A stretch of DNA of 40,621 bases, taken from positions 185,568-226,188 of the forward strand of contig JAWQFM010000026.1 in assembly GCA_033442325.1 (NCBI GenBank), in the 5' to 3' direction. The notes below the pieces were generated by a model, which did not search any database, had not been told where the DNA came from, and worked only from the letters and a program-made list of their open reading frames with translations. Below are positions 3,384 through 22,700 of the stretch, piece after piece; within the stretch, counting starts at the first letter, position 1, and each line of letters opens with the position of its first letter. Origin of the DNA: Salpingoeca rosetta (lineage: Eukaryota; Protista; Choanoflagellata). Both the position numbers and the translations under genes were made by a program.

Positions 3384-6300
3384 AGCGGACGATGACAGCG
3401 ACTCTGACTTTGAGCCGGAGACGGCTGTGAAGCAGCGACCACGCCGCACAACACGCACGCGCGCAGGCCGCAAGAAGAAGGCAGCGGAAGAGACCGACAA
3501 CACCAACGCTGCTGCTGACGTTGGCGAGTCGCCATCAGCATCAGCATCATCGTCGTCGTTGTCGTCGTCGTCTTCGTCTGGAAGTGGCCGCAAGACGCGA
3601 AAGGCAAAGACGGCCGCAATGAAGAAGACGAAGAAGGCAACAACCACGACCACCAAGAGCGGACGTACACTACGCGCCAAAACCACACGCAAGGCCACAC
3701 GCGCTGCACTGCGATCATCGGTTGAAGAGTCTGCAACGGACACGTCATCTGCGTCGTGGGCATCCTCCCGCACCTCCATGGCGGAGAGTGAGTTTGCGAC
3801 ACCAACGTCGGGATCGCCCGTGTCATCTGCAGCATCAAGCGGACGCGTAACGCGCGCGTCATCTCGCGCCGGTGCGCGCCATCGCACCAACAGCAGCAGC
3901 AGCAGCAGCAGCAAGAAGGCGGCTGGTAGGAAGAGTGCATGTGATACCGAAGAGCGCGTCGTAGATGAGGAGAGTGATGAGGAGGCTGTGTCGACAGTCA
4001 CGCGCGTGCAGCCCAACCGTCGCCGCATTGCTTCCATGTCATCCTCAGACGAGGATGGTGACGATGAGGCAGAGGAGAACGAGCAGAGTGACGACAACAG
4101 TGACAACAATGATAACGATGACGATGTTCGGGTGTCTGCAGCAACTGATGCGACGACGGCCGCCGTGCGCGAGGAAGTGTCGCCATCAACAGCCAGCAGC
4201 GTCTTTGCCACTCCAGTTGACCACACAACGGCGAGCTCACGCCTCGCTACCGCTGCTGGTGATGCTGACACGACAGTTGCCAACACCGATGAGAGCGTCG
4301 CTTCAAGCGCAGCATCTGCGGCAACAGCAAACAGCAGCGCAACCATCTGTGCATCTAATGCATCCACAGCTGCTGATTTGTCCTCCGTTGATGATGCTGC
4401 CTCCTCTTCGGCAACATCATCGTTTGTGTCTGTGGATGAGAGCGATGAGACGACACCTGCTGCGTCTGCCGCTTCGCTCCTGTCCACGACACTCGACAGC
4501 ACGGCCACCACGACAACGACAGCCACCACCGACGCTGACACCACCACCACCACGACAACGACAACCACGAGAGGCTCCACGCTGAGCGAGGACACAAGCA
4601 CAGCGCCATCGCGCAACGCAAGCATCATCAGCACAAGCAGCCGCAACACGTCAATGGCCTCTGCTCGCGAGCCATGCACACCAACGTCGCGTGTTGCAGG
4701 CGGCAGGAACATCCGGCAGGAGTGCCCCACGCCATCCACGGTAAAGAAGACAGGCCAGTTTACGCCCATTGCCAAAACAGGCACGTCCTCCATTGCGCGT
4801 GGGCGATCGAGCACGCAGCGCACGAGCTTCCGGCAACTGGAGAAACTCGGCGCCGTCAAGCAGCGCCTGCAGAATTTGCAGCGACAGCATGAGTTGCGGC
4901 AGCAACGGACACGCCAGTTGTCGCACACACCCACCCCTGGTGGAGGCAAGGGCCGACCAAAGCCCAAGATTGATCGCACGGCGCTACGCAACATCCCAGA
5001 GGATGACGTCATGCGCACGCCCGTGTCGTCTGCAGCCAACCGGGTGCGCTCCCGCTTTGGCGAGGCAGCTGACAACGCCACCAGCAGCAGCAGCAGTGCT
5101 GATGGCACGGATGCTGGCAACACATCGGCCATGTCGCTGTCGTCGTCCACTTCCTTCTCGTCTGCCGTGTCGTCGTCGACAGCCGGTACTTCATCCACGT
5201 CTGCGTCTGCTGCGCGTGGTGCTGGTGTTGGCGCCTATCGCTCCCGTCTGGCATCGGGAAGCAGCAGCGTGTATGGCAACCGCGCGCACCCGCGCATCCC
5301 CTCCGCATCCAAGTTTGGCGACAGTGACAGCGACGCAACGGTGCAGGCCTCTGACCACACCAACAGCACCAGCAGCGGCAGCAGCAACGCGGGCAGCGCT
5401 AACGCGGCCTCCCGTCTGCCTGGCAACATGTTTGCCAACGGGCCGCTGGGCAACGAGTCGCACGCGAGCAGCAGGCCCGGTGACATGTCATCGTCTTCGT
5501 CCACGGGTGTGAACAGCACCAACAGCAGCCGAGTTGTGGATGAGGCGTGGACCTCTGGCCTGTCGCTGTCATCATCGTCAGCATCGTCATCCTTCACCTC
5601 TGGCAACAAATCCAAGCTGCCAAGTGCATCTGACACCAGCAACAGCAGCACTGGCAAGTCTGGAGAAGAGAATGTGACGTCCTCCATGCTCATGTCATCG
5701 TACTCGTCCATTTCGTCATTCGCCGCCTCACAGGCCAAGTCGCTGCTGCGCGCGTTCTCGTCGGACACGTCTGCCACGAGCGACCAGGAGGCAGGCAGGA
5801 CCGCAAGTCCTGCCGAGTCCTCCTTCTCGGACGATGGGCGGTTCCACCCGAACGCGGCCAAGCGGAAGAGTGATCCCGCTGAAGAGAGCGAGAAGCGCGC
5901 CAAGGCGAGCACCCAGACACGTGCAGCACCACTCTCCAACATCGTCAGGTGTGTGTGTGTGTGTGTTATGTGTGTGTGTATGTTGTGTGTGTGTGTGTGC
6001 GTGTGAGGGAGGGAGGCGCTTGAGGGCGCTTTCTTGCGTCGTATGTGTATGTGTGTGTGTGTGTTGTTTTGAGATGTGTGTGTGTGCGTATGTGTGTGTG
6101 TGTTACTGGTTTCTTTGAAGCAGCTCACAGGATTTGGTTTTTGCATTCATCGTTACAAACCACACCTTTGATAGGCCCAGCAAGGCTTCAAATGCTTCGT
6201 CTTCGAGTGCAAACGGCCGTGTGGTTCCGGGCAACTTGGCAACAAAAGCGATGTCGTTCATCAAACCCAAGACCGCGCCAAAGCCGCAGCAGAAGCCCAA

Positions 6301-17114: not shown

Positions 17115-17563
17115 TCAGCTTGGGGTCAGGGCGTCACAGCCTCGCCGAAGAAGGACCGTGTAAGTGTGTTCCATGCCACCCTCCTCACCTAATGCATGCG
17201 AACAAGTGCGTTTGGGCACGTGTGAGACACGGGCAAGATGGACGTTGCGCTGAACATGAAAAGGAAGAACACGGGAGGCAAAAGACCAAAAAGAGCAAAG
17301 ATCTCGACACACACACACACACACGCACGCAAAATACTCACTCTGGACTGTGAATCGGAAGGCAGCCTGGGAGGTTGGCTCGATGGAACGAACAAACGAC
17401 TCCTGTGAGAGCACGACGGCATCAGAGGAGTGGGTCTGCATGACACCCTCGCAGCCAGCCGTCCACTCCTAAATCCAAGCGCAGCCGTATCAGTAGCCGT
17501 CGTGGTTCAAGAAGTGACCTCAAAATAAATTACAGTCAAGTCCCATCACGAGTGCACACACAC

Positions 17564-17614
<51 letters not shown>

Positions 17615-18334
17615 CGCACACACACACACACAGACACACGAACGCACCTCGACGAGGGTGAGGGTTGCATCTGGCCAGAAGGGGCGGGCGAGGATAACGG
17701 CGTCAACGGCTTGTGTGTCGAGTGCGGACGGAGCATCCACAATGAGCGCATATGTCGGCACGTCGAAGCGCCAGGGCGTTGCCGGGACGATGGAGAATGA
17801 GTCAGCAGGGATGGCGAGGGCCTCCACGTTGGCCAGATACGCGTTGCTTGACGTGGGAAGGGCGCACCTGACGAGCATAACACGGAGCCCGTGGATGAAG
17901 ATGGGAACACGTGGATGAGGATCGGTTGTTGAGACCGCGAACAAAACGATTGGAGCAAAGGAATCAAGTTTTGGCACGAACAGAGAGGCGGCAAGACCAA
18001 ACAGAGCCACAAAGAGCAACACACAGACACACACACACACACACACACACAGACAGACACACACACACACACAGACACACACAGACACACGCGTACAGGT
18101 GTCCGTCCCAGCCAGGCTGGCAGGCGCAGGTGGAGGGGGCGGTGCTGAGGGTGCAGTTGGCACGGCCTTGGAAGCAGTAGTCGCTGCACCAGTCGTAGTT
18201 GCTGGTGTAGCACTCATTGAACTCATTCACGCCAAACGCACACACGCACTCCCCTGCAAGCAGTGAACAATGCAACGTGAGCCAACGCAGACAAACACAC
18301 ATATTGCACCAAATGAGCAAACACACACACGCAC

Positions 18335-18383
<49 letters not shown>

Positions 18384-18526
18384 CACACACATACACAGCG
18401 TCATCACGCACCATCAATGCACGTCTCGTGGTCGCCACAGCCGCCAATGCACTGCACGGTGGATGGACGTCAAGCAAGAGAACACAAGCGTGTGAGATTG
18501 GCAAAAAGCATAGTAGTTTCAACCCT

Positions 18527-18566
<40 letters not shown>

Positions 18567-19638
18567 CGCACACACACACACACACACACCGTCGTCGTGC
18601 TGGTGGTGGTTGACGCAGCGGTGGTAAGGGCCTGCGAGACAGACGACAGAAAGGTGGAAAGCGAAGCAGTAACGATCGTCGTTGCTGCCACTGCCGCTGT
18701 CGTGCTCGCATCGCTCAACCCTGTTGCTGCTGCTGTTGTTGTTGTTGTTGTGGAGAGAGCACCGACGCCATCAGCCACGCCCATGCCCAGTGAAACGGTC
18801 GTGCTGGTGGATGATGTTGCGTTGACACCGTGGCTGCCACTGTTACTGCTGCCATCGTCGCTGTTGTCGTTCGAACGAATCAGAACAGCGACGCCAACAG
18901 CCAAGACAGAGGCAAGCAGCACACACAGCGTCAGCCACGCAAACATCTGCAGATACGGAAACCGCTTGCGATACACGACAGCCCCGTCACTCAGTGTCGC
19001 CTGTTCGTATGGTGGAGGACTTGGCTCTCCCCACAGCGCTTTCGTGGGCGGAGGGCCTGTGCCAGTGCTGGTGTTGGTGCTGCCACGACGGCTGTTCCCG
19101 CCATTCCCCTCCATGCTATCGTATGCATACCCGAACCCATGATACACCTCGTCATCAACACCGCTGTGGGTGCTCTCGTGGCTCTGGTGGCGGCGATGGC
19201 GGCGGCGGCGGCTGATGGTTCGCTGGCGAATGCGCTGGTTGAGCTCCTCCAACTCCTTGATGCGCAGCTCGAGGTGTTGTGTCATCTTTGACAGCTCCTG
19301 CACGGCGCCTACGCTCTCCATGAACACGCGGTCCTTGTTCACCACCAGCAGGTCGTCAATCTCCGTGCCGTCGTCAAGGGCAACGTCTCCGCAGGACTGC
19401 ACTGCGTCAGGGAGGACTTGCTGCAGCTCTTGCGCAACCACGCCCATCTCGTGTCGGTCGTCGCTGCTGCGCCCGGCCTTGCGGGCCCATTCCTCCTTCA
19501 AGTCGTACTCGTACAGGGTCATGCGGTTGACGTTGTCGAGGTGCCGCTTCGTGCTTGCAGCGTGGATGTTCTCCTTCACCCTCTTGTCCGACGTCTGCAG
19601 CAGATGTCCAGTCACCCTGCACGAGCGTGCGTGCGTGC

Positions 19639-19708
<70 letters not shown>

Positions 19709-22700
19709 AAGTGAGTGCAAGTGAGTGCGGGTATGTCGGCGTGTGCGGTGGCAAGATCAGTCGTGGCGTCTCACCCGAATTGCCTTTCCCTAACCCTTCC
19801 CCAACACACACACACACTCTCTCTCTTTCTCTCCTCCAACCCACCAAGCCCTTCCTCGCACTGACCTGATGTTGCCGGCGACGGAGAGCGCTTCCTGCGG
19901 GTCATCGACGTTGATGCCCACCTGGCCGTGGTGCACAACTGCCGACTGGGCCTTGCCACGGCTCCACTGCGTGTCCACCTCGCTGCTATATTGGCCGGGG
20001 TTTGACGCGCGCACGATGATGCGCTGGCACTGCGCGCCCTGCACAACCACGCACTGCCCAGACGACGTGTGTGCACGCAGCATGACGGCAAGCTTGAAGT
20101 AGCGCTGGTCCGGGTTTGGTTTCCCGCGCTTGCGCATGTTGTTGGCGGTTGTGGAGGTGAAGTGGAGGCGGGCAAGCCTGTGCACGCGGCGCCCCAGCAA
20201 CTCTGCAGCCGATACAACCAAGGGCTCGAACGAGGTCTTGGTGCGGTCTGTCTTGCTCTGCTCAATCGCAACAAGTTGCTCGTGGGCCTCCAACTGCAGC
20301 AATTTGAATATGTGTGTGTGTGTGTGTGTGTGTTGTGCGTGTGTGTGTGTGTGTGTGTGAATGCGACGTGAACATGGTGAAACAAAGCAGCGGTCGAGGC
20401 GAGATGCATGTCACATCATCACAACAACAGCGCACACCACACGATTAACACACGCGTCCCCATGCGCACAGACCACAACAACAGCCCTCAGCCCCTGGTC
20501 GTCCTCACCTTGAGGCCTGTGACGGAGATGGAGAGTTGAGTAACGTCGTGCAACGTGTCGTCAATCTTGACCGTCTTTGGCTCGCGGTCGCACGCCACCA
20601 GCACAGACAGCTGCATGCGCAGGGATGGTAGTTGTGTGCGTTTGAGTCGTGTGTGGCATGGGTTCAAGCAGGCCATCAAGTTGCTCCCCGGTGCGCTGTC
20701 GCACACACACGCACACAGACACACACACACACACACATACACATACGCACGCACAAGTGAACACACACTCTCACACTCTTCGCTCACCTGAAAGTGGTTC
20801 TTCTTCTGACACACAAACGCCTCGTCCATCGGGGAGTACGAGAAGCCCTTGTCCGCGCGAACCTGCAACGCACACACACACACACACACACACACAGAAG
20901 TGCGTGATAAGTTGGCGAGTGAAGTCTGTGCCGCGATCACACCCACACACGCACACACACGCACATATACGCAACCACCCCCCCCCCACACACACACACA
21001 CGCGAACTCACGTTGACGGTGAGGGGGATGTGCCTGCCTGCAGCGTCAAATACGGGACAGCGCTCTGTGTCGTCGCTGGTCTTGAAGACGAGCATGGGCA
21101 CATCAGACGGTACCTCCCCCGTCATCTCAAGCAGGTCCTGGGTGTCTGTGGTTGACCCTTTTTTCTTGCGACCACTGCGTCCCCCGCGCTTCTTGCCCTT
21201 GCCTTTGCCCGTGCTGCCCCGCCCGCCCTTCGCAGAGCTGCGTGAGGCAGATGTGATGCGTGCGCGCTTGTGCGTGTCCAGCCCACTGTTGCTGCCGTCC
21301 TCATCATCGTCGTCGTTGTTGCTGTCGCCGTTGCTGTTTGCGCTGTTGGTGCCGGGCGGGGAGGTGGCAGACGCAGACGCCGACCCCGATGACGAAGATG
21401 ACTTTGACGAAGACGACACGCGCGCAGCTGCAGCAACATGCCGCCGCTTTCCCGTATCTGCAGCACGAATGGCATGTGTGTGTGTGTGTGCGTGTGCGCG
21501 CGCGCGTGTGTGTGTGTGTGGCGGGGTCACACATATGTGCACGCGAAATTATTGTCTATCCATCCAAACTATCTTCCTTTTCCCTTTTTCCACATAACGA
21601 CACAGAACACTCAGCAACACAACAGCACAACAGCTCAACTCTACACCAGTCTACCCTTCTACCACCTTAAGACCTTACCACCGCACCGTCACCAGATCCC
21701 CCACAGCACAAACATGCGCACGAACCGCGTGCGGTGGTGTCAAAGGGCTGGAGGTGCAGGGAAGATGCAGGCTGAGGAAAGCCCATGTGCGCCATGCCCG
21801 ATTGATCTGGAATGCCATTTCGCGGGTGTGGCGGTGTTGGTGGTGGTGGCGGCGGCGGCATCTGCTGCCCAGAGGCTGCGCTGGTGTTGAAGGCTGCCTG
21901 ATAGAAGGCGCCCGGGGCGATGGTCGAGTGGGACGATGCGGGGTGCTGCTGGTGCTGCCTCTGCGGCGCACTCGGGACATACGCGTGCGTCAACGGCTTG
22001 GGCTGCTGCTGGGAGAGGGGCGGCTGCTGGTGCTGGTGGTGTTGCAGCCGCGTGTCAAACGGGAGCGAGGTGCCGAGCTGCGGGAAGAAAGGCTGCAGCG
22101 GGGGCGCAGGCTCCTCCGTGCCGTCCATGTCATGCTCGCCAGCGAGTGTCAGCGACATGGTTGACGTCGGCAGGTGCTGGAACCCTCCCTGCCCGCCGTC
22201 ATCCTCTCCACCGTCGTCACCAAGAGCAGTGTGACCGTGCCCCGAGTGCCGGCCGAGGCGGTGTTGCTGGTTCTGCTGGTGCTGCTGCTGGTGCACGGCG
22301 AGGGCAGGGAACGAGGCGGCTACATCGTCTTCGAGGGACGATGGGTTGGCGTTGCCACCCAGGGTCGGGTCCGTCATGACGGCGCCTGCAAGCATCAGCG
22401 CCTCTGTGGATGCGGTGAGGGAGTTTGGCGCGTTGGTGACGCCCGTGCTTCCGGGGAGATTGAAGGTCTCTGGCATGCCTGTGTTGAGTGCCTCCGTGCT
22501 GTCGTAGAGGGGATTCGTCTTGCTCTCCTGCCCGAGAGAGTGCAGGCCGAGGTGATCCGCACCACTCTGGTAGTGGTGGTGGTGCTGATGCTCGTACTCT
22601 TGCTGCCTGCGATGCGACTCGTACAGATGGTATCGGTGCAAGGGAGGCTGGCGCTGGTGCTGTTGCTCTTGTTGTTGCAGTTGGTGTTGTTGTTGTGGCT

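Follow-up and report, generated by a model that had tools for sequence, protein, structure and literature searches.

What the part of a MYRF protein that lies outside the cytosol contributes to its function is a live question: in mammals cleavage looks autonomous, whereas in the worm an extracellular region and a partner protein set trafficking and timing. A locus of the choanoflagellate Salpingoeca rosetta bears on this question. It lies in a 40,621-nucleotide stretch of contig JAWQFM010000026.1 (C26:185568-226188; hereafter the window), where an intron-rich, minus-strand gene of the MYRF family appears to continue, in its 3′ part, into exons for a stalk of mucin-like composition, a pair of EGF-like modules and a small tail domain. 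Do these exons belong to the MYRF gene and, if so, what might they do for its product? The best explanation of the whole, and in our view a reasonably probable one, is that a single gene encodes a type II membrane-tethered MYRF transcription factor whose ectodomain serves as an exoplasmic interaction and trafficking module.

The exons assigned to the core of the gene, and the elements that they contain, are as follows (coordinates refer to the window).

20788-20862, minus strand: first exon of the NDT80-type DNA-binding domain (DKGF...FVCQKKNHFQ); four MYRF relatives match it in tblastn (E 3e-7 to 5e-9); GT-AG borders.
20509-20610, minus strand: probable middle exon of the DNA-binding domain, predicted from an open frame with a CAG/C acceptor and an AAG/GTGAGG donor; tblastn gave no match.
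19866-20293, minus strand: main NDT80_PhoG exon of the DNA-binding domain; Pfam PF05224, E=1.8e-17; tblastn, E 1e-29 to 1e-41.
18590-19616, minus strand: exon A, encoding the ICA domain, the juxtamembrane region, the transmembrane helix and the Ser/Thr stalk, and ending in phase 0; Pfam and BLASTP.
19574-19591, minus strand: catalytic Ser...Lys motif SDKRVK, from the translation; matches S578/K583 of human MYRF.
19007-19018, minus strand: cytosolic PPPY (PPxY) motif, 20 residues ahead of the transmembrane helix; from the translation.
18878-18946, minus strand: single transmembrane helix of 23 amino acids (MFAWL...AVLI), type II; from hydrophobicity, flanking charges and alignment with the MYRF relative P0004.
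18590-18877, minus strand: mucin-like stalk of 96 amino acids, 47% Ser+Thr, with one N-x-T site; computed composition.

The initial annotation, made from the letters of the sequence, had proposed a MYRF homolog in which a transmembrane helix is followed by a Ser/Thr-rich stalk. Homology searches bear out the MYRF assignment. Pfam identified NDT80_PhoG (PF05224, E=1.8e-17) on 19793-20302 and both Peptidase_S74 (PF13884, E=1.6e-14) and MYRF_ICA (PF13887, E=1.8e-20) on 18590-19618, all on the minus strand. In tblastn, the four MYRF relatives matched the exons for the DNA-binding domain as well as the ICA exon, and BLASTP aligned exon A with P0004 at 57% identity over the ICA domain, with the transmembrane region aligning too (E=1e-6). 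The SDKRVK motif aligns with SDRRIK of P0004, and its S, D, R and K residues are invariant in an alignment of 46 sequences (A1). The Ser/Lys dyad of the ICA domain, S578/K583, has been proven catalytic in human MYRF (PMC3742443). Taken together, the Pfam core domains, the homology and the dyad place the gene in the MYRF family, with an intact, predicted self-cleavage apparatus. The cytosolic N-terminal part thus combines an NDT80-type DNA-binding domain with an ICA domain of the phage-tailspike type in which the Ser/Lys dyad is intact.

The transmembrane helix is preceded by RKR and followed by an acidic stretch. These charges, along with family membership, fit a type II orientation. The statements on the literature made in the initial annotation are likewise accurate: MYRF has type II topology and its ICA domain cleaves itself by means of a Ser/Lys dyad (PMC3742443) and, in the worm, trafficking to the surface precedes regulated cleavage (PMC8099431, PMC12803276). 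The PPPY motif that it had placed on the cytosolic side of the helix was found there (19018-19007). The motif is missing from three relatives (P0001, P0003 and P0109), suggesting that it is not a conserved component of the mechanism. It stands at the end of a cytosolic juxtamembrane region (19020-19240, minus strand) of approximately 95 residues, in which Arg and His (RRRRHRRHQSH) abound, as do Gly and Ser. In C. elegans, a juxtamembrane region inhibits MYRF cleavage (PMC12803276).

Beyond exon A, the model comprises five more exons.

18412-18451, minus strand: exon B, first half of EGF module 1 (C-x3-C-x5-C), ending in phase 1.
18097-18253, minus strand: exon C, second half of EGF module 1, then EGF module 2 up to its fifth cysteine (CxCxxGWDG); eight cysteines in all, ending in phase 2.
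17648-17867, minus strand: exon D, sixth cysteine of EGF module 2 and N-terminal part of the tail domain.
17342-17468, minus strand: exon E in its long form, central part of the tail domain, including a conserved W...C.
17115-17188, minus strand: exon F, last strand (HTYTVLLRR), second tail cysteine and the TGA stop (17117-17115).

The peptide strings quoted in the initial annotation all lie on the minus strand and their translations are exact. The five introns separating exons A to F all have GT-AG borders, and their phases (0/1/2/0/1) form an unbroken chain to the stop. GC content is 0.60-0.64 in the exons versus 0.50-0.52 in the introns, and the in-frame GC content at third codon positions is 0.65-0.84 in the distal exons, with exon A at 0.71. 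Coding potential was also assessed by a codon log-likelihood test trained on the long open frames of the window, with exon A as a homology-proven reference. In all five distal exons the proposed frame scored best among the minus-strand frames, at 0.12-0.22 bits per codon (exon A, 0.24). Skipping exon B breaks the frame. Both six-cysteine patterns are split across exon junctions and each therefore exists only after splicing. Moreover, the A-B intron, 138 nt in length, provides neither a start codon nor a signal peptide for a separate gene, which implies that the disulfide-rich module can reach the secretory pathway only via the MYRF helix.

The alternative is that the distal exons do not form part of mature MYRF. 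The mRNA would then end after the stalk, by intron retention or early polyadenylation, with exons B to F representing a relic or a portion of another transcript. It may be said for this possibility that the exon model is read from genomic sequence, that read-through into the A-B intron meets a stop after 40 codons and that many relatives are short-tailed. Against it stand the five GT-AG introns with their compatible phases, the coding signal of exons B to F, which equals that of exon A, and the shortness of an A-B intron that offers no start or signal peptide to an independent secreted protein. The remaining evidence comes from a second organism. L170, a 4967-nt genomic contig from the Logan assembly of SRR17161166, carries the HMMER match P0109 and encodes, on one strand and in this order, an ICA domain, a transmembrane helix, a Ser/Thr stalk, a second Ser/Thr stalk ending in C-x3-C-x5-C, EGF modules 1 and 2 and a tail. 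Its EGF exon aligns with exon C at eight of eight cysteines (BLASTP E=2e-11; phmmer 5e-9). The equivalent of exon D (3833-4057) has 75 codons and, like exon D, starts with Cys and ends with Glu (weak similarity by phmmer, P=0.006). The last exon unites the counterparts of exons E and F and retains both tail cysteines. Three introns are identical in position and phase in the two genes: one after C-x-x-G (phase 1), one after WDG-x (phase 2) and one after the final Glu of exon D (phase 0). The whole path in L170 runs through seven exons, all with GT-AG borders and compatible phases, and is open to the stop; no Met occurs in the approximately 240 codons upstream of the EGF part.

That an independent genome has matching exons behind its own MYRF supports the predicted model in which exons B to F are genuine and attached to MYRF. 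By the same comparison of gene sequences, the EGF-EGF-tail ectodomain on MYRF is conserved in at least one other species, intron positions included. An mRNA devoid of the distal exons is now unlikely, and in our estimate very much so.

Some details of the model deserve mention. In-frame AG acceptors at three points would let exon E begin at 17468, 17438 or 17405. The shorter forms lose the Cys and Trp that have aligned partners in L170, and an even number of cysteines (14) is likewise obtained with the long form only; on these two grounds the long form is favoured as the predicted one. The E-F intron (17189-17341, minus strand) is 153 nt long, in frame and stop-free, within an open reading frame spanning 17115-17441, so that its retention would add 51 residues without truncating the protein. 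Long (GT)n/(CA)n tracts are present in every intron (for example at 17530-17645, 18000-18090, 18300-18400 and 18530-18590). Introns of this type translate as CVCV or THTH and mimic Cys-rich motifs, and five of the six CxCxx[GP][FYW] cores found by six-frame translation of the window are artefacts of this kind. The CVC of EGF module 1 is itself encoded by GT-repeat-like DNA; its counterpart in L170 is CMC, and the position is conserved.

The exoplasmic C-terminal part amounts to approximately 300 amino acids, comprising the mucin-like stalk, the two EGF-like modules and the tail domain. All profile, sequence and structure tests on its distal portion were made exon by exon. Module 1 has the spacing C-x3-C-x5-C-x4-C-x-C-x9-C and is completed only across the B/C junction. 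Module 2 (C-x3-C-x6-C-x8-C-x-C-x8-C) is completed only across the C/D junction, its sixth cysteine being the first codon of exon D. The spacing of both six-cysteine patterns, which the initial annotation had read after splicing, was thus confirmed, and all their cysteines are conserved in L170. Module 2 also fits the PROSITE EGF_2 signature C-x-C-x2-[GP]-[FYW]-x4-8-C (CACQPGWDGHL, then the C of exon D); module 1 has EGF spacing and departs from the signature. Pfam, run on exon C alone and hence in the absence of the sixth cysteine of module 2, returned nothing other than EGF families, at 11-15 bits (E 0.026-0.5; cut-offs 24-37). The best match of exon C among PDB sequences is the EGF domain of HB-EGF, with E=0.73 and the correct register, and the AlphaFold model of this exon (predicted local distance difference test, pLDDT, 52) contains a central beta-hairpin only. 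From their sequence we accept two predicted EGF-like modules, the second with more confidence. No paralogs of exons C and D were found elsewhere in the genome.

The tail domain measures approximately 135 amino acids, is spread over exons D to F and has two conserved cysteines. The initial annotation had likened it to the cadherin-like beta-sandwich PF12733. Three results speak against this label. Pfam gave no PF12733 match at E≤10 on exons D, E and F or on the stop-free frame formed by exon E, the intron and exon F. Exon D of S. rosetta did not match a custom profile, for which 36 PF12733 domains were collected from bacterial genomes and against which each exon was scored singly with all filters off. 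Finally, a low-confidence AlphaFold model of exon D (single exon, pLDDT 62) is mixed alpha/beta rather than all-beta. Pfam also found no tail match at E≤10 on three open frames of L170 (covering the exon-D equivalent and the EGF exons, with the last exon in its coding frame left out), and PF12733 had no six-frame match anywhere in the S. rosetta genome (55.4 Mb, 68 contigs).

The custom profile nevertheless recorded some signal. Exon F matches its positions 80-93, the last strand, with P=0.002 (among 5000 shuffled sequences one reaches this score, and among 5000 real fragments nine do), and exon E has a weak match to positions 42-59 (P=0.04). The exon-D equivalent of L170 matches positions 12-32 by hmmsearch (P=3.5e-4; nulls 5/5000 and 13/5000) and positions 1-50 by hhalign (P=7.7e-4). 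The matches of L170 exon D and S. rosetta exon F are collinear but weak. The tail resembles PF12733 in size, in an N-terminal L-x-x-L...F-D-x-x-x-x-Y-x-x-x-V pattern that L170 displays clearly and S. rosetta in degenerate form, and in a C-terminal G...TYTV..R strand. It differs in that the alignment needs insertions of 10 and 5 residues and in that the two conserved tail cysteines are not a feature of the family. The HMMER and AlphaFold examination of this region that had been called for, run per exon, thus left the PF12733 label suggestive only: the custom-profile matches of exon F and L170 exon D stand in its favour, the Pfam scans were negative on every exon and the models are of low confidence. 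On the strength of the sequence patterns, we hold it slightly more probable than the contrary that the tail domain is a divergent cadherin-like beta-sandwich of the PF12733 type. Searches for relatives by other means had little to add. Foldseek with the single-exon models gave nothing at E≤0.001, and no relatives of exon D were found in a word search, two metagenome scans, PDB sequences or the ESM Atlas. The L170 counterpart retrieved low-sharing beta-barrel look-alikes from the ESM Atlas, which were taken as chance.

How widespread is this ectodomain? None of the best 150 MYRF cluster representatives carries an EGF signature or similarity to exons C to F. A Pfam scan of 46 long MYRF representatives identified the three core domains in all of them, MRF_C2 in 23 and an EGF or cadherin-like domain in none. 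Presence in just 23 of the 46 suggests that MRF_C2 (PF13888) marks an animal subgroup rather than the MYRF family. It found no match on any distal exon of the S. rosetta gene, in which the stalk, EGF-like modules and tail domain replace the MRF_C2 tail. This agrees with the earlier claim that the ectodomain is unlike that of animal MYRF. The likeness to animal MYRF and C. elegans MYRF-1 otherwise extends over the NDT80 DNA-binding domain, the Peptidase_S74/ICA domain with its Ser/Lys dyad, the MYRF_ICA helix, the single transmembrane segment and the type II layout. Dictyostelium MrfA, a non-animal MYRF orthologue, is also membrane-tethered and undergoes the same tailspike-type autoprocessing (PMC3828593). 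It differs, in a comparison made by description only, in that an EGF-type ectodomain is not reported there. MYRF has been noted in the choanoflagellate Monosiga (PMC13294678); a text search of the literature returned nothing combining MYRF with Salpingoeca and no description of an EGF-type MYRF ectodomain. The S. rosetta genome has a second MYRF paralog, on C7 at approximately 45.1-45.8 kb (L003:9119-9809, minus strand), with NDT80 and ICA exons present. A search for EGF-tail exons near this paralog (L003) or near other MYRF relatives (L171-L174, L007 and L008) produced noise only.

If the protein behaves like other members of the family, it would trimerise via the ICA region and cut itself before the catalytic Ser. 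The released N-terminal trimer would proceed to the nucleus, and a trimeric stub consisting of the ICA remnant, the PPPY motif, the transmembrane helix and the ectodomain would stay in the membrane. The ectodomain could act at the preceding stage, by setting the location, timing and partners of the full-length trimer before cleavage. A parallel would be C. elegans MYRF-1 with PAN-1. In the worm, the extracellular region of MYRF is needed for surface trafficking and normal function (PMC8099431); arrival at the surface occurs through extracellular PAN-1 contacts, and cleavage is gated by the juxtamembrane region together with the PAN-1 tail (PMC8099431, PMC12803276). By analogy, the most likely role of the S. 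rosetta ectodomain would be to mediate exoplasmic interactions that set the place and time of cleavage.

Several observations weigh against this explanation, the three adverse tail-domain results among them. Cleavage in mammalian cells proceeds autonomously, whether or not the protein is integrated into a membrane (PMC3742443). The last exon of the S. rosetta paralog encodes a transmembrane helix followed by RPR and TAA, so that the product appears to be tail-anchored and to have no ectodomain, and several MYRF relatives have short tails only; together, these data suggest that an ectodomain is not required for MYRF function as such. Exon A, used as an HMMER query, retrieved 1128 MYRF relatives, among which the genome's own protein does not appear (a word search with the same exon gave one foreign fragment only, again without the own protein). 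Lastly, outside the EGF exon, the similarity between the L170 and S. rosetta ectodomains is weak (P 0.006-0.05), which suggests a much higher rate of evolution in the ectodomain than in the ICA domain (25-30% identity versus more than 50%).

Part of this evidence would suit a model in which cleavage occurs constitutively in the endoplasmic reticulum. The ectodomain would then aid folding or exit from this compartment, or act after cleavage as a trimeric surface glycoprotein, with no control over the transcription factor; the stub could be, for example, an adhesion or matrix component whose turnover proceeds through the PPPY motif. ICA cutting is indeed autonomous and works without a membrane anchor, as well as in E. 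coli and yeast (PMC3742443). The apparent lack of an ectodomain in the paralog of the same genome and the short tails of close relatives point in the same direction, and the fast evolution of the ectodomain fits a surface module under different constraints. The model is harder to reconcile with the worm data, as the extracellular region is needed there for function and surface trafficking (PMC8099431) and the juxtamembrane region can gate cutting (PMC12803276), or with the fact that the fusion of this ectodomain to MYRF has been kept in two species. On balance, we regard constitutive cleavage as an unlikely though serious alternative to an ectodomain that would govern where and when the full-length trimer is cut.

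The layout also invites comparison with Notch, where extracellular EGF modules are likewise tied to the proteolytic release of a nuclear effector. Could the protein be a true one-component receptor, in which the EGF modules and the tail bind a ligand or a neighbouring cell and so permit or block ICA self-cleavage? The type II layout with extracellular EGF modules on a stalk would allow it, the C. elegans protein is a precedent in that it localises to the surface and its cleavage is regulated (PMC8099431, PMC12803276) and the fusion is conserved in a second species. Yet the ICA domain lies approximately 95 residues from the membrane and on its opposite side, with no apparent route of transmission; regulation in the worm uses the cytoplasmic tail of a partner rather than ligand binding; and two EGF modules with one small domain are common in surface proteins that are not receptors. 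Such a receptor seems to us rather improbable. Notch itself is a type I protein with tens of EGF repeats, an LNR/NRR, cleavage by ADAM and gamma-secretase upon ligand pull, and an ankyrin-repeat co-activator. None of these features has a match here: the topology is type II, ICA is the sole cleavage module and the Pfam scans of the exons detected no LNR/NRR or ankyrin domains. Beyond generic EGF spacing, there is no sequence kinship between Notch and the S. rosetta MYRF. A Notch-type switch triggered by ligand is a less likely role for the ectodomain than exoplasmic interaction and trafficking. Teneurins, whose intracellular domain can reach the nucleus after release, provide an analogy of layout only: a DNA-binding domain and ICA self-cleavage are both absent from them, and apart from the EGF modules their far larger ectodomain bears no relation to the one described here.

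What is new is thus the choanoflagellate MYRF with a stalk, EGF modules and a small domain, an architecture present in at least two species; the MYRF family itself was known. An ectodomain-bearing MYRF and an apparently ectodomain-less paralog within one genome constitute a natural contrast for the study of ectodomain control over transcription factor release. If the ectodomain does control release, direct surface-to-nucleus signalling by a self-cleaving membrane transcription factor would predate animals. The more far-reaching proposal, that an EGF/beta-sandwich ectodomain senses an extracellular or contact cue and gates ICA cleavage as a pre-animal, protease-independent counterpart of Notch, strikes us as quite doubtful. 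If the ectodomain exerts no control, the gene would be another case of domain shuffling, a trait typical of surface proteins in choanoflagellates.

The L170 gene departs from that of S. rosetta in several respects: it has an extra module between the transmembrane helix and the EGF part, common to P0003 and P0001, as well as the second stalk and the fused exons E and F, and it does not have the PPPY motif. A hydrophobic open reading frame at 2379 was considered as the possible start of a separate secreted-protein gene and was rejected, as it runs into a stop at the next exon, its hydrophobic run corresponding to a T-rich acceptor tract. The tail exons of S. rosetta show no kinship to the post-stalk module of P0001, P0003 and P0109, and this module has no counterpart in the S. 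rosetta gene. It occupies L170:2180-2890 (plus strand), residues 240-309 of P0003 and 265-340 of P0001, after the first stalk and ahead of the EGF part. It had no match in Pfam. Its elements are, in order, C-x10-CP, an ISFAFSN-type strand, a helix and PGS-IKNVFFV; by eye, this arrangement recalls the SEA-type domain of mucins.

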